A program made the position numbers and the translations under genes. This document shows positions 54,514-63,235 of a stretch of 64,000 bases of DNA, piece after piece. The notes beneath the pieces were generated by a model, which saw only the letters and a list, made by a program, of their open reading frames with translations, ran no database searches and was not told where the DNA came from. The DNA is taken from assembly GCA_937625935.1 (NCBI GenBank), contig OW569372.1, positions 248,001-312,000 on the forward strand. Reading direction: 5' to 3'. Within the stretch, counting starts at the first letter, position 1; each line of letters starts with the position of its first letter. Source of the DNA: Tetramitus jugosus (lineage: Eukaryota; Protista; Heterolobosea).

Positions 54514-56232
54514 TTAATTGGGTTGTTCTTGTTGTTGTTCTTGGTTCTCTTGGTTTTGGCATGTGGATGCATCTTCTAGGTTGGCTATCGTAGTGTCTGA
54601 TATTGTCGTTGCTGTATCAGTAGTTGGATTCGTGCTTGTCGAAGAAGAGCTAAGTGAAGGTCGATTCAATATCCTGAGTCTTCTTCTCTTTCGCCTCATT
54701 GCCATTGTTTGTTCCTCCAATGGCTTTGTGTCTTCTGCTTCTGCTTCTTGTGTGAGATCTCCATGCTCTTCAGCTTGAAAATGTTGACCGTTATCCGAGG
54801 AGGTAGCTGTCGAGCTTGGTTCTAACTCTCCACTGCCCTTATTCGAATCCTCTTCTACTGTTGGTGGTTGAGAATTAGCTTGGGATTCGGTGATGTCAGT
54901 TAGGGATGTATTATCGACACCCTCGTCGGTAGGAGGTTGTGTATCTACAAGAGATATTGCTGTGAGCGTGTCAATGGTCTCTTGTGTCGATGGTGAGCCG
55001 TCTTCATTGCTTTGTTGTGATTCAGATGAGATTGAGTTCTCCTGGTTGACCAGTGCTCCAATCGACGATGTTTTTCGACTCTTAATTTCAGCAATAATGG
55101 AGCAGAATGTTGCTTTGGTAGTGCCTGCCTTTGGTTTCGATTCTTGGCTGGATTGAGTGCTATTCGAAAACATAGACATGATACTCTTCTGAGACTTCTT
55201 CTTGCTTTGAACTACCCTTGTAGGTTGTTTCAGCAATTCTTCATTCCTCTTCACAATCGCTAGCACTTGTTCGTTTGATTTAGGATTCAAAGAATCCAGA
55301 TTTGCATTATATTGTAGCACATATTCCTTGTGTCTCCATACTAAATCATCCTTCTCACCCTTTTCGTTCAACCCGCATTTTCGGAGAGTATCGCGTAAAT
55401 TCTTCAGTGACATGAGTCCATACACTGGTGCTACAATCCGTTTTGTACTAACTAATAGCGACCGAGCAGAAGTTGGTTCTGGAGACGCCGTTTTAAATGA
55501 CACTGGTTGAATATTCTTGATAATGTTCTCATCGAGACAAGAATTGGCATGTAATCGCATTTGATCACTCGAGAATCGCTTGTTGCACGATGGACAAACA
55601 ATAGCCGTATCCTTTGTCAGATCCACATCCACTTCGACTTCATTGCTTTCGTCAATTTCTTTTCGCTTTCGCTTTCTCATCTTACTACTACTGTTATCTA
55701 CTCGTACACTACTATTTCCACTGCTTCCTAGAGATCGACTCGCAACTACAACTTCATTCACACTACTCGTCTTCATAAACATGGATACTTCATCTGGCCG
55801 CAACACACTGGTACTACTCTTCCGCACCACTTCTCCACCCCCATCATCACCACCACCCCTACCAACAACGATATTGTTCTCTAGCGAACTTGCCAGCATT
55901 GGCCTCAACTCAACAAAACTCTGTACTAAATTGTCAACGAGATGATTATTGTAGAGACATGAGGAAGACACGGAAGTATGGCACAGTGGACACGTCGTTC
56001 GGAATTCGAGAGCTCTTCGAATGCACAACGAGCAGAAGGTGTGAGAACACACATTAAACGTCATTGCAGCAGTGAACAGTTCATGGCAAATGGGACACCG
56101 AAGAAAGTTTTCATGGTTTGTGATTTGTGGAATGGGCCATGTATAATCTAGCCATTGTGCCTCTGTTTGTTGATCCGATTCTTTTGTCATTGGTTTTGTG
56201 CACGTGGATAAGCTTCTACTATTGTCGTTCAT
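54514..56232 (-). CDS. RAD18: E3 ubiquitin ligase RAD18
   Basis: RING LRCPIC...CSHTFCSLCIRR...CPLC, UBZ CPSC...H...C, and SAP-like region ending RHKEYVLQYNANLD. Start is ATG 56232 or 56190. Confidence 0.9.
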   Translation of the reverse strand: MNDNSRSLSTCTKPMTKESDQQTEAQWLDYTWPIPQITNHENFLRCPICHELFTAAMTFNVCSHTFCSLCIRRALEFRTTCPLCHTSVSSSCLYNNHLVDNLVQSFVELRPMLASSLENNIVVGRGGGDDGGGEVVRKSSTSVLRPDEVSMFMKTSSVNEVVVASRSLGSSGNSSVRVDNSSSKMRKRKRKEIDESNEVEVDVDLTKDTAIVCPSCNKRFSSDQMRLHANSCLDENIIKNIQPVSFKTASPEPTSARSLLVSTKRIVAPVYGLMSLKNLRDTLRKCGLNEKGEKDDLVWRHKEYVLQYNANLDSLNPKSNEQVLAIVKRNEELLKQPTRVVQSKKKSQKSIMSMFSNSTQSSQESKPKAGTTKATFCSIIAEIKSRKTSSIGALVNQENSISSESQQSNEDGSPSTQETIDTLTAISLVDTQPPTDEGVDNTSLTDITESQANSQPPTVEEDSNKGSGELEPSSTATSSDNGQHFQAEEHGDLTQEAEAEDTKPLEEQTMAMRRKRRRLRILNRPSLSSSSTSTNPTTDTATTISDTTIANLEDASTCQNQENQEQQQEQPN

Positions 56233-56291
56233 TATTCTGTTGCAGCACCGTTTTGTGAGTTCGATCAAATTCTTGACCTGTTGGTTTTGAA

Positions 56292-56302
56292 TTGGCGGGA
56301 AA
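56292..56302 (-). promoter_or_regulatory. Consensus E2F-type site upstream of RAD18
   Basis: TTTCCCGCCAA on the minus strand, about 60 nt upstream of ATG 56232. Confidence 0.45.
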
Positions 56303-56347
56303 CGCAACTCTGTTTTATTTACACAAAAAATAACCTGGAGAAATGAA

Positions 56348-56761
56348 CTACTCATCATCTTCGTCAGGTCTGGGTACTCTCTTGTTTTCAAAGCTCTTCC
56401 ACCTCTGCTCCAAAATCTCCATTCTGCTCTGTGCATCAGCTTCAGATGCATCCGAGTCACCTACTCTACCATAAAACGTTCGCATATCACCCATTTCCTT
56501 TCTCTTGATTTTCGTTTCGACTTCTTCCTCGAGCTCCACTGATAAAGTTCTTCCAATCAAGTATGTTGTGCCCAAAACAAGGCATAATATCGTTGGGAAA
56601 GCAATATGGAATGGTGTTCTTCCTGATTTGCGAGTCTGTGAATACAGCAGTTGCGAAAGTCTACTCTTTGATTTCTTTTGAAATGCCTTGTTCTGCTTAT
56701 TTCGTTCTCTGATATGATCTTGGAGATAATCCTCCATGTCGTCCATCTTCATGAAACCCAT
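56348..56761 (-). CDS. COX16: Cytochrome c oxidase assembly factor COX16-like
   Basis: PFHIAFPTILCLVLG TM helix and C-terminal FENKRVPRP signature. Confidence 0.78.
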   Translation of the reverse strand: MGFMKMDDMEDYLQDHIRERNKQNKAFQKKSKSRLSQLLYSQTRKSGRTPFHIAFPTILCLVLGTTYLIGRTLSVELEEEVETKIKRKEMGDMRTFYGRVGDSDASEADAQSRMEILEQRWKSFENKRVPRPDEDDE

Positions 56762-56886
56762 CTTTAAACTCTCCTTGTTCAAAAATGCTTCTTCTCCTCA
56801 GATTTTGATTCGGCAAATTAAAAATTTTCACGAATGACCGACAACAAAATTGACGCCAAAAAACTTTGTGCCATTGGACCATCATC

Positions 56887-58473
56887 ATGTCTCACATACC
56901 AACACCCAAAAGCAGCACCGTCACCATTCCCTCTCTCTTCCTCCCTGAAGCTTCACTACTGACAACAAACTATGCCGCACCTCCTCCACCTCCACTGACA
57001 CACAACTCGATTACACAGGCAGCACCACTGACACAACTCGTGCTCGAATCAAAAACACTTGACGTTTGTTTCATGGACCCTGTCATGATCAATCAATTTG
57101 CTTTCCAGAGTTGGTTACAAGGTGAATCGATTGATGAAACAGCAAAGTTGTACAATAGAAGACGATTGCAACAAGTGAGTCAAATTGTGAGTGGTTCATC
57201 AGCATCACCCATGATGAGTTCCACCAGTGCATTGTCATCACCAATGTCATCCAACACTGCACGCAAACAATCCAATGGCACTGATTTCGCAACGATATCG
57301 GAGAATATTAATAATCCGACGCAAAAGATGATACATGAGCTGTTGTATGTGGAGATTGTGAGTCAATATCGAATTTTTGATCACATTGAAAAGACATTGT
57401 CTCAACCAAACTTGTTCATGAAACAAGACAGTTGTTGCGAGGTGCAATTGGCGCCCAGTATTCGCAGAAAATTAATTGAGCAGTATTTTGAGTTGGATGA
57501 TTGTGTGTTGAGAGAGTTGTTGGGTAAGAAATTGACACAAAAAGTGAGAAAGGATCTGGATGACGTATCGGAGAAAACGGGTGTGAAAATTGTGAGTTGT
57601 AGACGACAGTTTGACAATTTGAGAAATGTGGCACAGTATTTGAAAACGGCACTGTTTCAGATGCCGACGCACCGTGAGATGCCGACGACGAAGACGATGA
57701 ATGGTGAGAGTAAGAGCTTGAATGGTGGTAGCACCACCACTGCCATGACGACAACGAGTAACAACGACAGTAGTATGAGCAATACGACATCGTTTGATGA
57801 TTTGGTGAATATTGTGAGAGGTCATTTTTTGTTGTCGGAAGAGTTGGCCAAAAAGTATGCACTCGTGTTGTTCATGGGACATCATCGTTTCGATTGTCAC
57901 AGGCGTAAGATGAAAGATTTTAGTTATCAGGATTTTGAGAGCTTTTGTACGCACATGGTCTATCATTGGACGAACACTAGGCACTACATCAGGCAGCACA
58001 ACACAAAAAATGTGTTGTCTGCTCTTAGTTTGATGAATTTGGACTTTGATTTTTATGTGTTACGTGATATTAAGCAAGCAGTGTATGGTCACAAGAATCG
58101 ATTGAGTGAATATGAGACTGGTGTGATCAGAGAGCTCAAACAGACGAATTCAATTTCAGCTGAGCAATTGTCCCGGCTGGAAGAAAAGTTTTCGCAATTA
58201 TTTAAGGCACTACTCGTGATTGGAGCGGGTTTGGTACAGACGAAGGAGGTGCGTGACTTCTTTATTGATTTACACGAGAAGTTTGTTGATGTTTTGGTGC
58301 GGCAGATTGGATTATCAAAGCATGAGGTGTTGAGATTTTGTGATGCTTTGATAACGCAACTCGACTCTGTGAAGACGAGTCACAAGGCGAAACTCACTAA
58401 ACTTTGGACAACTTACATTGTCACTGTGCGGAACATTAGTGCAGGCATGTTTGATGCATGCTCAGAAAAATAA
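56887..58473 (+). CDS. FIBP: FGF1 intracellular-binding protein family
   Basis: RELLGKKLT.KVRKDLDDVSEKTGV...SCRRQFDN and EVRDFFIDL.EK. Confidence 0.9.
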   Translation: MSHIPTPKSSTVTIPSLFLPEASLLTTNYAAPPPPPLTHNSITQAAPLTQLVLESKTLDVCFMDPVMINQFAFQSWLQGESIDETAKLYNRRRLQQVSQIVSGSSASPMMSSTSALSSPMSSNTARKQSNGTDFATISENINNPTQKMIHELLYVEIVSQYRIFDHIEKTLSQPNLFMKQDSCCEVQLAPSIRRKLIEQYFELDDCVLRELLGKKLTQKVRKDLDDVSEKTGVKIVSCRRQFDNLRNVAQYLKTALFQMPTHREMPTTKTMNGESKSLNGGSTTTAMTTTSNNDSSMSNTTSFDDLVNIVRGHFLLSEELAKKYALVLFMGHHRFDCHRRKMKDFSYQDFESFCTHMVYHWTNTRHYIRQHNTKNVLSALSLMNLDFDFYVLRDIKQAVYGHKNRLSEYETGVIRELKQTNSISAEQLSRLEEKFSQLFKALLVIGAGLVQTKEVRDFFIDLHEKFVDVLVRQIGLSKHEVLRFCDALITQLDSVKTSHKAKLTKLWTTYIVTVRNISAGMFDACSEK

Positions 58474-58491: not shown

Positions 58492-59802
58492 TTACTTTTC
58501 TACTTCAACGATAATTTTTGACTTTGGTTGGATAGGATATCGTTCAAAGTAGCGAGGTACAATTTCGACTTGAACTTCAATGTCATTGGCATCCTTCTCA
58601 GTCATCCGCAATGCTTTCGGTTTCACTTTTGACGATTTGCAAACAGAGTCCAAATATTGTTGCACGAGAGATATCAGAGAATCCAATGATGGTTGAGACG
58701 GCGTGTTCAGCTTAAAGATTTTCCTTGGCTCCATTAGAACTTCAAAGAATACAGAGACAGTATCTGGTGTTGCATCGGCCTTCTTGACCATCTTTGATGC
58801 TGTCGATACTTTTGATACCTTTGTTTTCGTTAATGGCTTGGGTTTCTCTTCTTGTACTGTTGACTCTGGAGCTGGCTCAGGAGTCTTCTTAATCGCACTA
58901 AAGACCAGCTTTGTTTTCTTTGGTTGATCAGCGGCAGATCCTAATTTAGTACCAGTCGTCGTCTTTGATGCCACCATCTCCAATCGCTTCTTCTTATTCT
59001 CTTCGTCTACTCTCGTCTTTCGACACGTTGAAAAACACTTGGAGCACACTCTGCCCTTTGCAATATTCAAATTCGGGAAACATCGCTTATAATCCATGAG
59101 AAACGTTTCCAATTTGTACGATATTCCCACAATTGAAGTAGCACATGTTGCACACGTAACAACACTTGTATTGCCTGATCGATAATCTCTGCACGTTTCA
59201 AAACAAGCAGCACACACTGATCCCTTGTCTCCTGAATAATTGGGAAAACATGCCATATAATCCATCTTGAACGCACCAGACTTGTGCTGCAACGCCTTTG
59301 CAAACAACCTCTTGCACACCACACATTGATTCACATTGTGCACATCATCCACATCATCCAAATCATTAATCACTGCACTCTCATTCTCTTCAATCTCCAT
59401 AGTAGCCTTATTCTCTGCAGATGCACTTCTCGCACTCAACATTTTTGGTTTATAATTCGTGACAATGATTTTCGTTGATGATGCTCCTCCTGATGATGCT
59501 TCGAACGATGGAGTGGCATTTTCAGAGAACATTTGAATACGAGGTCCCAATTTTTGAACAACTTGATACTTTGGAGCAGTATTGTTCTTGATGTGACTGC
59601 CATTGTCATTTGTGTCGTTCGTGTGGTTGTCATTTGTGTGATTGTCTTGTTGTCGGAGTTTTTTGCGCTTGCGATCAGAGTCTCCAGAGATGCGTTTCAT
59701 GACTCGATCGGCCTCTGCCATTTTTCGTTTGGCTTTTTCATACTCTTTTTGGAGCTTGTTGGTTTTGTTATTGTTATTGGTTTCTCGTTGTCGTTTGGGC
59801 AT
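58492..59802 (-). CDS. Basic protein with two tandem Cys-rich repeats
   Basis: NLS-like N-terminus and two copies of CxxC...MDY..CFPN....G.VCxxCF.TCR. Confidence 0.75.
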   Translation of the reverse strand: MPKRQRETNNNNKTNKLQKEYEKAKRKMAEADRVMKRISGDSDRKRKKLRQQDNHTNDNHTNDTNDNGSHIKNNTAPKYQVVQKLGPRIQMFSENATPSFEASSGGASSTKIIVTNYKPKMLSARSASAENKATMEIEENESAVINDLDDVDDVHNVNQCVVCKRLFAKALQHKSGAFKMDYMACFPNYSGDKGSVCAACFETCRDYRSGNTSVVTCATCATSIVGISYKLETFLMDYKRCFPNLNIAKGRVCSKCFSTCRKTRVDEENKKKRLEMVASKTTTGTKLGSAADQPKKTKLVFSAIKKTPEPAPESTVQEEKPKPLTKTKVSKVSTASKMVKKADATPDTVSVFFEVLMEPRKIFKLNTPSQPSLDSLISLVQQYLDSVCKSSKVKPKALRMTEKDANDIEVQVEIVPRYFERYPIQPKSKIIVEVEK

Positions 59803-60210
59803 ATTTTTGTTTGTGTTGCTTGTTGTTCAGCACAAGGAATGCTCAAGAAAATCAGCGACGTGTCGGGTGATAGCGAAGGGTATTTTTTGGCGCCATAAAA
59901 TGCTGTAGCCCGACCCGCCGAACATCATCGGGTGTCAAATGTCATACAAAACTGGTTGAATCGCTGATTGTGAATGAAAAGGGGCATTGATACTCGTTAC
60001 TTCTTCAAGTCAAATAGGGAGGCAATACTACCTACCCCCAGTGATGTTCTGTTGATGATGGGTGGTGTTACTCGCTGCGCCAAAAACACTACGAGAAAAC
60101 AAACAAACGAACGAACAACAAACCAATCTATTCTAATTCAACGTTTCAACAACAGACAAACATCGAACAACACCAACACAAACAATAAGATCATAGAAAG
60201 TTAAATAATC

Positions 60211-62721
60211 ATGTCTCTGTTCAAACGTAATCAATACAAGACAGTGAAGCTTCAACCATCGAAACAAGCCAAAAAACGAACACAGCTGCACAACAAGGTT
60301 CAACACACTGTGGGCACACTGAGTGGTCAACACACGACAACACTCTTGTTCCAAGCAGTACAGTGTCCACCCAATGAACCACTAGAAGAGTGGATCGCTG
60401 TTCATCTCATCCAATTCTACAACAATTGTAATGATCATTATTCTTCGTTGGCTAGTAGTCACTGTGAAGAGTGTTCGGAGAAGACTTGTCCTCAGATGTG
60501 TTCCGGTTCAGATTATGTCTACCTGTGGAGAGACATTGATAGTGATTTGTACAGTAAACCAACCAGTGTCTCTGCTCCCAAATATGCCAGTTTGGCACTC
60601 AAGTGGTGCGAAAATACGTTGAACAATGAGAAGGCATTTCCACCTCAAGACGCTCAATCAATGCCCTTCCCAAAGGACTACCTGAAGACATATGTCAAGG
60701 AGATTTGTAAAAAGTTGTTCCGTATTTATGCACACATTTATGTGGATCATGATAGACAGAACAAGAAGGGTGATCCAATGGATTTTGGTTTCAAGCACTT
60801 TATGTGCTTTTCACTGTGTTATGCTTTGTTGAGTGAGAAGGAGGTGGAACCGTTGAAGAATTGGATATTGAATCAGTTGTCTCTGATTGATTTGCATCGA
60901 TTTTTGAAGGAGCAGAAAAAGTCGACCAAGGAATTGTTGAAACAATCAGCGAGTTTGATTGTCAACGCAGCAGAGGCAAACAATAGTAATAGCAATGGTA
61001 CCTCGAACAACAATAGCAGCAGCAGTAGTCACAATGGTGGATCATCGAACAGCAGCAGTGCTCATTCGTCATCTCTTTCTTCTTCATCGTCCTCATCGAA
61101 TCTCTCTTCGCATTCGACCGATCGAGCAAGAAGACAGTCGAGAGCTGGATTTGGAATCGGAGCACCTATCGGAGGATTTAGCGATCACTTGACAACATTG
61201 TCAGTTGTGATTGTGGAGGCAAAGAATTTGGGAGCCAAGGATTTGTCTGGTACATCGGATCCATATGTCGAAGTGAGACTGGGCAAGGAAGAGTTTAGAA
61301 CATCGACAGTGTGGAAACAGTTGAATCCAGTGTGGGAGGAAAATTTTACATTTGTGATTGATGCAAATATGAAGCCAGAGAGTTCATCCTTGAGCCTCAA
61401 GGTGTACGATCAGAACATTATTATGAAGGGAACGTTCATTGGTATGTGCGAGGTGGATTTGGGACAATTGCTGGACGAGAGGATGCAAGATTTGTGGATT
61501 CCGTTGCATGGAGCGTCAGATAGCGAATCATCTGATCATGACTCGCGTGGCAGTATTAGAATGAGACTTCAATATGTGTCATCGGAGAGTGGAAGATCAA
61601 AGTATTTGAACAAGATTGTTCAATTGTCTCACTATAGAGAGATGATGGACTATTTGCATGAACTTCCAGTGAGAACATTTATTGCCTTGTTCGATGTGAG
61701 TCTGTTGAGTCAGATTGATCAATATTGGAAGTCAGTTCTGCATGTGGCTCAGGCAAAGAATGCTCAATACTTGCAAAATGTCCTGTTGAAGGTGATCGAA
61801 TTAGAAGTGGGCCGTTGTGAGACAAAGGGAACTTTGTTTAGAGCGAATAGCATTGCTTCGAAACTGATCTCGCATGCTGTCAGAACGTACGGAGGTGTCA
61901 ACTATTTGGCTCGCGTTCTTACACCAAGTCTAGAACGAATCTGTAGGGAAGAAGAACTGTTGGAGGTCAATCCTGCAAAGGTCAAGGCTGAAGATGGCGT
62001 GGATGTGCAAAGAAACATGCACAAGATTATTGAATTTGCTCAGTCGATTGTGGATGCAGTGTTGGAGTCTGAGCATTTGCTCCCACCAATCTTCTTCACT
62101 CTGATTCACCACTTGAGAAAGAGTACCGAGGAAAAGTTTTCACAAGATGAGAATGTTGGATTCATTGCGACATCTGGACTATTATTCCTGAGATTCATCT
62201 GCCCAGCTTTGCTGTCCCCTCAATTATATGGTCTGCCCTCTACAAATGGTAACAACAATGTACAACGAAACTTGCTAATGATCTCAAAGATCATCCAACA
62301 GTTGGCCAATAATCTGCAATTTGGTGAAAAGGAATCATTTATGGTTCCTGCCAATTCATTCATTGAGGAGAACACTCCACGATTGTCATTCTTCTTTGAT
62401 TCGATCAATGTTGAGTATGACGTGCCACTACCAACAGAGCCATTGCCAGACGACAAGTTGTTATTCTCGTTGTTTTCTGTGCATGAATTGTTCCATAAGA
62501 ACATTGATGCGCTGAGAGCAAAGATGATGGATACCAGTGAAACAGCAGACAGTACTCTACTCAAGCACTTCCACTTTACCACGGATTCAGAGTTTGATCT
62601 CAATCAGTCAAAGAACGCTCTGTTTGGATTGGTGAACATTGTTGTCGATCTAGGAGCTCCTCCTCAGGTTTCTCTCTCAGCCAGAAAGCGTATCAAGTCA
62701 TCCTTTACTCAAAACAAATAA
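60211..62721 (+). CDS. MOB (Mob1/phocein)-C2-RasGAP fusion protein
   Basis: MOB: EWIAVH, C.EKTCPQM, YLWRD, SAPKY, KKLFRIYAHIY..H. C2: VEAKNL...SDPYV...LNPVWEE. RasGAP: TLFRANS, FLRFICPA, SKIIQQLAN. Single 836-codon ORF. Confidence 0.9.
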   Translation: MSLFKRNQYKTVKLQPSKQAKKRTQLHNKVQHTVGTLSGQHTTTLLFQAVQCPPNEPLEEWIAVHLIQFYNNCNDHYSSLASSHCEECSEKTCPQMCSGSDYVYLWRDIDSDLYSKPTSVSAPKYASLALKWCENTLNNEKAFPPQDAQSMPFPKDYLKTYVKEICKKLFRIYAHIYVDHDRQNKKGDPMDFGFKHFMCFSLCYALLSEKEVEPLKNWILNQLSLIDLHRFLKEQKKSTKELLKQSASLIVNAAEANNSNSNGTSNNNSSSSSHNGGSSNSSSAHSSSLSSSSSSSNLSSHSTDRARRQSRAGFGIGAPIGGFSDHLTTLSVVIVEAKNLGAKDLSGTSDPYVEVRLGKEEFRTSTVWKQLNPVWEENFTFVIDANMKPESSSLSLKVYDQNIIMKGTFIGMCEVDLGQLLDERMQDLWIPLHGASDSESSDHDSRGSIRMRLQYVSSESGRSKYLNKIVQLSHYREMMDYLHELPVRTFIALFDVSLLSQIDQYWKSVLHVAQAKNAQYLQNVLLKVIELEVGRCETKGTLFRANSIASKLISHAVRTYGGVNYLARVLTPSLERICREEELLEVNPAKVKAEDGVDVQRNMHKIIEFAQSIVDAVLESEHLLPPIFFTLIHHLRKSTEEKFSQDENVGFIATSGLLFLRFICPALLSPQLYGLPSTNGNNNVQRNLLMISKIIQQLANNLQFGEKESFMVPANSFIEENTPRLSFFFDSINVEYDVPLPTEPLPDDKLLFSLFSVHELFHKNIDALRAKMMDTSETADSTLLKHFHFTTDSEFDLNQSKNALFGLVNIVVDLGAPPQVSLSARKRIKSSFTQNK

Positions 62722-62770
62722 AACTTGTAAAACATTATCCTGATCAGTCGCCACCAAAAAAACAAACACA

Positions 62771-63235
62771 ATGGATCGTCTGCCTTTCTCAGTTCTTCCC
62801 TTGGGCTTCATACTCGGTTTGATCCACACAGATCTGGTCTATGAATGTGTGCATCCAGCGCAAGATGCACACGAGTATTACAGAGTTTACTTTCATCAAG
62901 TTCCTTCACTTTGCCAGGCTCTCGTTCCCTTGTCTGGTGTTCTGTTGTTGAGTGATTCTGCGAGACGTCTCTTCAAGTTTGGCGTGAGAAACAAGGTGGA
63001 AGTATTGAGCGCTCTTTTGTTAGTATTCTCTTTGGCCTGCTTCAGCTTGTTCTGTGATCCGGCAAAGTTGGCACTCATTGCATTGGATCCTGATCTCCCC
63101 TCAAATCAATCGGCCATGAAGGATCTAGTTGCTCAAATTGCTACCTGGCACCAGATATTGGCTGTCGTGCTCACGACTTCAACTCTCTTACAATGGCTCA
63201 ACAATTGTCGTTCCAGTCACCTAAAGAATGACTAG
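62771..63235 (+). CDS. Four-TM small membrane protein, possibly Shr3-like
   Basis: Four hydrophobic helices; GFILG..D, EYY and terminal IA..H.IL....LLQ pattern. Confidence 0.55.
   Translation: MDRLPFSVLPLGFILGLIHTDLVYECVHPAQDAHEYYRVYFHQVPSLCQALVPLSGVLLLSDSARRLFKFGVRNKVEVLSALLLVFSLACFSLFCDPAKLALIALDPDLPSNQSAMKDLVAQIATWHQILAVVLTTSTLLQWLNNCRSSHLKND

Follow-up and report, generated by a model that had tools for sequence, protein, structure and literature searches.

Gene and domain organization

The stretch of DNA analysed here, referred to as the window, comprises 64,000 nucleotides of contig OW569372.1 from the heterolobosean Tetramitus jugosus (assembly GCA_937625935.1, positions 248,001 to 312,000, forward strand). 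At positions 60211-62721 of its plus strand lies a single intron-less open reading frame (ORF) of 836 codons, running from ATG to TAA, whose predicted product carries a MOB domain, a C2 domain and a RasGAP domain, in that order. An earlier note, made from the letters of the sequence, had described one 836-codon frame with these domains and a Ser/Asn-rich linker, and had proposed that the protein couples Hippo/NDR kinases to Ras. Profile searches, comparison with known structures and structure prediction all agree with the described architecture, the coordinates of which were right to within a few codons. The features of the gene are collected in Table 1.

The MOB domain named in the note gives a significant match to the Pfam profile Mob1_phocein (PF03637) at residues 46-215, with 143.2 bits against a cut-off of 27 (1e-41), spanning profile positions 9-170 of 170. 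The C2 profile (PF00168) matches residues 329-432 with 91.3 bits (5e-26) and the RasGAP profile (PF00616) is found with 102.6 bits against a cut-off of 28.3 (3e-29). Sequence searches of the PDB gave the same picture: the MOB part matches MOB1 of L. donovani (9uo7, 3.5e-38) and human MOB1A (3.7e-31), the C2-GAP fragment of p120RasGAP (9bz4, 3.3e-32) aligns over residues 330-772, and the GAP part matches p120GAP (2.3e-29) and neurofibromin (1.2e-25).

The full-length protein was folded with AlphaFold2 (AF2) from an input alignment of 60 sequences. The model (mean predicted local distance difference test (pLDDT) 80.6, predicted template-modelling score (pTM) 0.60) contains a well-folded MOB domain, a helix at residues 228-258, a disordered segment at residues 260-322 with a pLDDT of 25-34, a C2 β-sandwich and an all-helical GAP domain. 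When the model was compared with known structures by Foldseek, it matched 9bz4 at an E-value of 3.6e-21. The template-modelling (TM) scores, normalised to the target, were 0.81-0.88 for MOB1 structures and 0.74-0.82 for the SynGAP C2-GAP, p120GAP and NF1 GAP domains, 1wer and 1wq1 both reaching 0.82. By its size (836 residues) and by the C2 and RasGAP domains C-terminal to MOB, the protein departs from the stand-alone MOB form of 210-240 residues.

Table 1. Features of the MOB-C2-RasGAP gene, in positions of the window
Feature	Residues	Position	Strand	Basis
Approximate transcript extent		60148..62737	+	Metatranscriptome contigs
Whole coding sequence	836 and stop	60211..62721	+	ORF list and translation; collinear, joint-free RNA-derived contigs
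N-terminal regulatory tail with T11 and T36	1-45	60211..60345	+	HMMER alignment to full-length human MOB1A
MOB core	46-222	60346..60876	+	Pfam; PDB alignment; residue tables across relatives; Foldseek
Basic helix after the MOB core (DLHRFLKEQKK...)	228-258	60892..60984	+	AF2 helix; family-specific
Disordered Ser/Asn-rich linker	259-325	60985..61185	+	pLDDT 25-34; length differs among relatives
Candidate AGC-kinase/PKA-type phosphosite in the linker	RARRQS310	61123..61140	+	Conserved basophilic motif
C2 domain	326-456	61186..61578	+	Pfam; AF2 β-sandwich
RasGAP with flanking helices	459-833; catalytic core about 521-735	61585..62709	+	Pfam; p120GAP/neurofibromin alignment; Foldseek
Arginine-finger codon (TLFRAN)	R544	61840..61842	+	Aligns with p120GAP TLFRAT; invariant in all relatives
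FLR-motif arginine	R661	62191..62193	+	Aligns with p120GAP FLR; invariant in all relatives
Conserved C-terminal tail, LGAPPQVSLSARKRIKSSF	814-832	62650..62706	+	Conserved pattern across members

Transcription of the gene

The region of the fusion gene (60148-63050) recurs across studies in numerous soil metatranscriptomes, with all or part of it present in nine RNA runs. This suggests that the organism, or a strain sharing about 99% of its sequence, is a common and active soil amoeba. The contigs of four of these runs were mapped to positions 59850-63050. In three of them, from three studies, one collinear and joint-free contig runs over the ORF (X3, 60148-62697; X2, 60166-62737; X1, 60193 onward), so that the linker is crossed as one unit. 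The contigs start 18-63 nucleotides 5' of the ATG, and two of them end at most about 25 nucleotides from the stop codon. The stretch 59850-60063, between the fusion gene and the divergent upstream gene, is covered by none of the four RNA runs and thereby serves as a control against DNA carry-over. Compared with the window, the RNA contigs show about 99% identity and one additional CAG after position 61049, in the linker; this agrees with a 99% identical protein of 837 residues (P0001; Logan contigs L001 and L002).

Downstream of the fusion gene, 50 nucleotides past its stop, begins a small ORF (62771-63235, plus strand) of 154 residues with hydrophobic segments and no Pfam match. One RNA run has both on a single contig, and in two others the small ORF is on separate contigs of lower depth. 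These are X2 and X3, in which the depth of the downstream gene is 7.3 against 29.9 and 3.1 against 19, respectively.

The gene, which belongs to a heterolobosean soil amoeba, is thus real, consists of a single exon and is expressed, as seen in assembled contigs, which are not proof of one molecule. The open frame, the transcript-like ends and the independent assemblies over the linker make two genes or a mis-assembly very hard to maintain; the earlier note had named separate mRNAs or a mis-assembly at the linker as what would undo its reading. That two neighbouring genes or a mis-assembly have been read as one ORF is highly improbable: automatic gene callers do annotate the MOB and C2-RasGAP parts of several relatives as separate genes, and the oligo-dT run X8 does fall into three pieces, but the splits in the relatives fall at short GT..AG introns within the MOB domain rather than between the domains, X8 is broken at a low-depth spot (about 60846) and in the low-complexity linker (61083-61093), the frame is open through 836 codons, assemblies from several studies cross the linker independently, and the domain order is kept in at least nine lineages.

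A family with the same domain order

A protein search returned four proteins in which Mob1_phocein, C2 and RasGAP occur together, at 99, 66, 60 and 50% identity, all titled 'hypothetical protein'. The family was extended by an exhaustive phmmer search of 1.84 billion cluster representatives, of which the best 150 were considered. One further protein, P0014 (753 residues, 33% identical), contains all three Pfam domains. Two others, P0016 and P0021, are called as C2-RasGAP proteins only, and MOB sequence is found upstream at their loci, L015 and L022. Reading the intron-containing relatives exon by exon, by in-frame translation and tblastn, revealed several arrangements. At L015 the C-terminal half of the MOB domain lies directly upstream of the C2-RasGAP part, up to the contig end; at L022 the whole MOB part is upstream, interrupted by three short in-frame introns (L022:5035-6000); and at L005 (P0004 and P0051) one intron of about 50 nucleotides, GT..AG, lies within the MOB domain (L005:5951-6000). 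At L025, the locus of P0056, MOB exons lie upstream on the same strand, with gaps of about 280-375 nucleotides between matched exons (L025:2420-3812), and L026, the locus of P0078, starts inside the MOB domain. The intron content of the MOB part thus varies among members, so prokaryote-style gene calls split the family and hide its architecture.

In all, the MOB-C2-RasGAP order is found in P0001-P0004, P0014 and P0160 and at the loci L015, L022, L025 and L026, that is, in at least nine protist lineages at 30-99% identity, which answers the call of the earlier note for orthologues. A quick maximum-likelihood tree of 53 rows was built from the C2-GAP region; in it the nine fusion rows all belong to one cluster of 13, with a Shimodaira-Hasegawa-like approximate likelihood ratio test (SH-aLRT) value of 94. 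The other four rows of the cluster are truncated proteins; the P0056 and P0078 loci carry MOB, and the other two contigs end early. The domain order is consistent with one origin. Among the best 150 of the 1.84 billion representatives, no fusion was found outside this family; since a fusion is expected to score well above 230 bits, it would rank near the top of these 150. Look-alikes in the ESM Atlas were ordinary C2-RasGAP clusters only, all below 0.9 and none with a MOB domain, and a word-based search with the MOB part alone returned five proteins, without taxonomic signal.

Conservation was followed over the whole range of the family. Down to 30% identity, and in the members covering each position, the zinc ligands, the K-K/R-R residues, E56, E60 and W61 of the MOB domain are unchanged or conservatively replaced, and so are the arginine finger, the FLR arginine, K693, Q696 and N700 of the GAP domain. 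Synonymous sites are saturated between the window gene and its 60-66% identical orthologues, so that most ratios of nonsynonymous (dN) to synonymous (dS) substitution rates are not computable; dN and identity were therefore used. In these comparisons dN is 0.09 for the MOB tail, 0.14-0.17 for the MOB core and 0.17-0.27 for the GAP domain, and the corresponding identities are 87%, 75-80% and 68-77%. No segment reaches a higher identity than the tail, whose 87% is measured against the orthologue of 60% identity. The tail and core of the MOB module are conserved as much as the GAP domain or more, which argues that the module is not a decaying passenger. Purifying selection maintains the design in at least nine protist lineages.

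The MOB module

By PDB score the MOB domain is closest to class I MOB1 proteins, with 115-138 bits for MOB1 against 74-83 bits for MOB2. In the HMMER alignment with full-length human MOB1A, the Cys2His2 zinc site is present, C88/C93/H175/H180 corresponding to C79/C84/H161/H166 of human MOB1. K167/K168/R171 take the places of K153/R154/R157, which form the phospho-Ser/Thr pocket of the human protein (PMC5461540). In the N-terminal tail, T11 (YKTV) and T36 (GTLS) align with T12 and T35. The zinc ligands and the basic pocket named in the earlier note, and the T12/T35-like threonines that it had aligned by eye, are therefore borne out by this alignment. What K153/R154/R157, T12/T35 and the acidic patch do in MOB1 is documented (PMC5461540, PMC4917820, PMC5612953). 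Human MOB1 favours phospho-Thr followed by hydrophobic residues (PMC5461540), and its phosphorylated N-terminal tail acts on the core, relieving autoinhibition (PMC4917820).

The 18 residues of human MOB1 that contact NDR2 were taken from PMC5612953 and mapped through the same alignment. Ten of the 18 are identical in the window MOB domain. The patch that contacts the second helix (α-2) of the NDR N-terminal region (NTR) is kept, E51/E55/W56/V59/F132/P133 of MOB1 corresponding to E56/E60/W61/V64/F143/P144. The predicted phospho-peptide pocket is the safest functional inference for the domain, and binding of the MOB domain to an NDR kinase is plausible.

Helix, linker and C2-RasGAP part

The MOB core is followed by a basic helix whose residues are invariant in the near relatives; a basic stretch occurs at the same place in distant members. 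The disordered linker after it contains a site of RRxS or RxRxxS type in all seven members examined (RARRQS310, RRRRAS, RMRRQS, RSRRHS, RSRSKS, SRRGS and IRRRSAS).

The C-terminal part of the protein is an ordinary C2-RasGAP of the p120GAP/SynGAP type. In the C2 domain, judged by the D-x5-D, D-x-D-x5-D pattern, three of the five calcium-ligand Asp residues are present (D344, D350 and D400), and N402 and T408 stand at the other two positions, at the equivalents of which synaptotagmin-type C2 domains have Asp. The observation in the earlier note that only some of these Asp residues are kept was correct. D344, D350, D400 and N402 are invariant across relatives. In the GAP domain, alignment to p120GAP supports both the arginine finger TLFRAN and the FLR motif that the note had pointed out. 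The protein ends in a tail with the pattern LGxPPQ[VL]SLxxR[KQ][KR][IV]..F, present in all members, including those at 30-35% identity. A phosphosite in this tail was considered and dropped, as the Ser/Thr position is not conserved in register.

Candidate partners in the genome

The 26-Mb genome contains five MOB genes, four of them stand-alone and the fifth the fusion; it contains about 14 RasGAP genes, and only the window gene is joined to MOB. There are two NDR-family kinases, L020 (P0167) and L021, with Cbk1 and STK38 as best PDB matches; both end in a hydrophobic motif, F-x-x-[YF]-T-[FY]. For a conserved one of these kinases, the nearest named relatives come from Willaertia magna (56% identity), Andalucia (53%) and, at 51% each, Acrasis kona and Naegleria lovaniensis, in keeping with Heterolobosea. 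At L024 (G000:C22:162541-165669, ORFs 33-362 and 727-1635) the genome encodes a Ste20 kinase that resembles MST/Hippo. Its acidic linker carries two T-I-V-[HK] motifs, similar to the phospho-Thr sites on which MOB1 docks. The presumed partners, predicted NDR and MST-like kinases, thus exist in the genome. Hippo in the animal sense, with YAP as output, is not implied by this.

The kinase P0167 (L020, G000:C35:233000-237200) has an insert of about 110 residues, rich in Ser and presumably disordered, between the two helices of its MOB-binding NTR; its orthologues in Willaertia, Acrasis and Naegleria have short loops in place of the insert. Co-variation of the NDR kinase with two altered MOB residues, D75 and H76, was considered and dropped, because comparison of heterolobosean NTRs showed that the helix register assumed for it was wrong.

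Proposed mechanism and alternatives

The reading that we prefer, and to which we give about an even chance, is that the protein would be a Ras (or Rap) GAP whose location or activity is controlled by the MOB module. By docking in trans on a Ste20 (MST-like)-NDR kinase module, the MOB domain would determine where and when the GAP acts. Docking would most securely go through the basic pocket, with phospho-Thr motifs of a scaffold or of an activated MST-like kinase as its ligands, and possibly also through the retained acidic patch, which would bind the N-terminal region of an NDR kinase. The T12/T35-like threonines would gate the docking, as in MOB1, and the C2 domain would keep the GAP at the membrane, with a calcium dependence that is probably weak or none. 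The net effect would be a local shut-off of Ras where the cytokinesis/polarity kinase module is active, and the RRxS site of the linker is a candidate control point for a basophilic AGC kinase. As the arginine finger, the FLR motif and K693 are invariant across the range down to 30% identity, selection appears to act on catalysis itself and not on binding alone.

Several observations weigh against this reading, most of them at the kinase-contact surface of the near clade, to which the window gene belongs. The MOB1 residues M70/L71, which contact the first helix (α-1) of the NDR NTR, are replaced by D75/H76. The groove for this helix is altered elsewhere too: Q67 is changed to N, G39 to Q, and the region of L173/Q174, between H6 and H7, is changed, three residues shorter and of low pLDDT. 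MOB1 D63, needed for LATS binding and not for NDR binding (PMC5612953), is Q68, and K104, one of the K104/K105 pair required for MST binding, is S115. The D75/H76, Q68 and S115 type changes are common to the window gene and the relatives at L003 and L005. NDR docking may therefore be weakened or retargeted in the near clade, and with the kinase-contact residues so changed, NDR binding is not to be assumed. The earlier note's picture of a Hippo/NDR-to-Ras coupling protein is accordingly supported in part: the phospho-peptide pocket, the T12/T35-like threonines and the GAP catalytic residues are intact, but a role as a canonical NDR/LATS adaptor has to be put more cautiously, given D75/H76, Q68 and S115 at the kinase contacts. 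Outside the MOB domain, the linker site has Arg and not His at position -5; the NDR/LATS phosphosite motif is HxRxxS, and the site fits PKA/Akt-type kinases better. The C-terminal coiled coil of the MST-like kinase is a borderline match to Pfam Mst1_SARAH, with 23.2 bits against a cut-off of 23.1. A predicted complex of MOB residues 40-230 with the NTR of P0167 (residues 28-215) scored 0.02, with the partner, which includes the Ser-rich insert of about 110 residues, poorly folded; this score speaks neither for nor against docking.

The changes are not a property of the whole family. The distant fusion members L014 and L022 have M/L (T/I in L022), D and K at the positions concerned. M/L, D and K also occur there in the stand-alone MOB1 genes of the genome from which the window comes, as far as these are readable. 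Since distant members carry canonical contacts, ordinary MOB1 contacts were probably present in the ancestral fusion, the shift in specificity having come later, in the window's clade.

It is rather unlikely that the MOB module works in cis, as a phospho-switch within the molecule. Its pocket would then bind phosphorylated residues of the same polypeptide, in the tail (pT11, pT36) or the linker (pS310), so that the module folds onto the C2-GAP unit or is released from it, which would gate GAP activity or membrane binding. The phosphorylated tail of MOB1 acts on its own core (PMC4917820), and such a switch would be suited by the high conservation of the tail, by the flexible linker with an RRxS site in every member and by the remodelling of the α-1 groove in the near clade. 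Regulation in cis alone, however, leaves the conserved trans-binding patch (E56/E60/W61/V64/F143/P144) unexplained, and the AF2 model, with its modest pTM and disordered linker, gives no sign of a fixed MOB-GAP contact.

Unlikely, in our view, is a reversal of roles, with the C2-GAP part mainly an address that would take a MOB co-activator to membrane rich in Ras-GTP, there to activate NDR, and with Ras shut-off as a secondary effect. Membrane-targeted MOB1 reportedly activates NDR/LATS kinases, according to Hergovich and colleagues, the C2 and GAP domains each bind membrane-associated targets, and conservation of the MOB part is no weaker than that of the GAP. A mere address, however, would not account for catalytic residues (arginine finger, FLR, K693) that are invariant over distances of 30% identity, and the NDR α-1 contacts are changed in the near clade.

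The third alternative, distinctly unlikely, supposes that in this clade the MOB fold has been retargeted to a non-kinase ligand, such as a GEF or a phosphorylated scaffold of the centrosome or cortex like yeast Nud1. Unconnected with NDR or MST kinases, it would only read phospho-Ser/Thr in a general way for the RasGAP. The canonical M/L, D and KK residues of the distant members and the acidic patch retained in all members speak against this. It would fit with the pocket being a general phospho-Ser/Thr module with several non-kinase ligands (PMC5612953, PMC5461540), with the D75/H76, Q68 and S115 changes, which are clade-specific and clade-conserved and look like a change of specificity rather than decay, and with four stand-alone MOB genes that could serve the NDR kinases.

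A doubtful extension of the preferred reading, a GAP placed or switched by its MOB module, is that MOB1-type adaptors and C2-RasGAPs are functional partners widely in eukaryotes, the fusion acting as a 'Rosetta stone'. If this were true, recruitment or activation of a C2-RasGAP would be the general way in which the Ste20-NDR-MOB module turns Ras off, and in the heterolobosean gene two partners that elsewhere associate non-covalently would be permanently joined. The unexplained increase in activated Ras on loss of NdrC in Dictyostelium would be a case in point.

Relation to known systems

MOB proteins are usually treated as small stand-alone NDR/LATS co-activators, and according to a review they are generally single-domain proteins of 210-240 residues (PMC7096357). 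With the MOB1 activators (human MOB1A/B, yeast Mob1, L. donovani MOB1 9uo7) the window protein has in common the fold, the zinc site, the pocket, the acidic patch and the T12/T35-type tail. It differs from them in that its MOB domain is the N-terminal module of an 836-residue RasGAP, in the extra basic helix after the core and, as in the rest of the near clade, in the changed M70/L71, D63 and K104 positions and the shorter H6-H7 loop. With p120RasGAP (9bz4), SynGAP (3bxj) and the GAP1/RASAL proteins it shares a C2 domain directly N-terminal to RasGAP and the conserved arginine finger, FLR and Lys; unlike these C2-RasGAPs, it lacks SH2, SH3, PH and BTK modules and has an N-terminal MOB domain, a family-specific C-terminal tail and a C2 domain with three of the five calcium-ligand Asp residues.

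In the literature searched no description of a MOB-RasGAP architecture was found, and no named database protein shows MOB-C2-RasGAP. The earlier note had called the arrangement unfamiliar, and it is indeed rare among the 150 best of the 1.84 billion representatives. MOB-C2-RasGAP is thus a new, conserved domain architecture built from known kinds, and the clade that carries it is narrow.

The nearest known counterpart is in Dictyostelium, where NdrC, a LATS homologue with a Ras-binding domain, binds Ras, and its loss raises activated RasB and RasG (PMC4120859). As proposed for the fusion, NdrC provides a physical link of the NDR/LATS-MOB module to Ras in an amoeba, with the kinase module promoting Ras inactivation. 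The link consists of a Ras-binding domain on the kinase in NdrC and of a RasGAP on a MOB-type co-activator in the window protein. Since Dictyostelium belongs to Amoebozoa and the window organism to Discoba, which are different supergroups, these would be independent solutions. Dictyostelium also has C2GAP1, a small C2-RasGAP without MOB that functions in chemotaxis adaptation by local shut-off of Ras at the membrane of an amoeboid cell.

Crosstalk between the NDR module and Ras is poorly understood beyond a few animal and Dictyostelium observations. A MOB1-type module with its regulatory tail, joined to a RasGAP with intact catalytic residues, predicts a direct functional link of both systems, in this case in a deep-branching lineage, Discoba. 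The family is at the same time a natural experiment in the evolution of the MOB surface, with canonical kinase contacts in its distant members and changed ones in the near clade.

Neighbouring genes

The gene order upstream of the fusion is shared with its 60% identical relative (L003:3-3095, compared with window positions 54517-58470) and comprises a RAD18-like RING/SAP gene on the minus strand, a FIBP-domain gene on the plus strand and the fusion gene on the plus strand. Between the FIBP gene and the fusion, the window has an ORF of 436 residues on the minus strand (58495-59802) with repeated Cys-rich blocks and no Pfam match. L003 lacks this ORF, and the FIBP and fusion genes are only about 150 nucleotides apart there.

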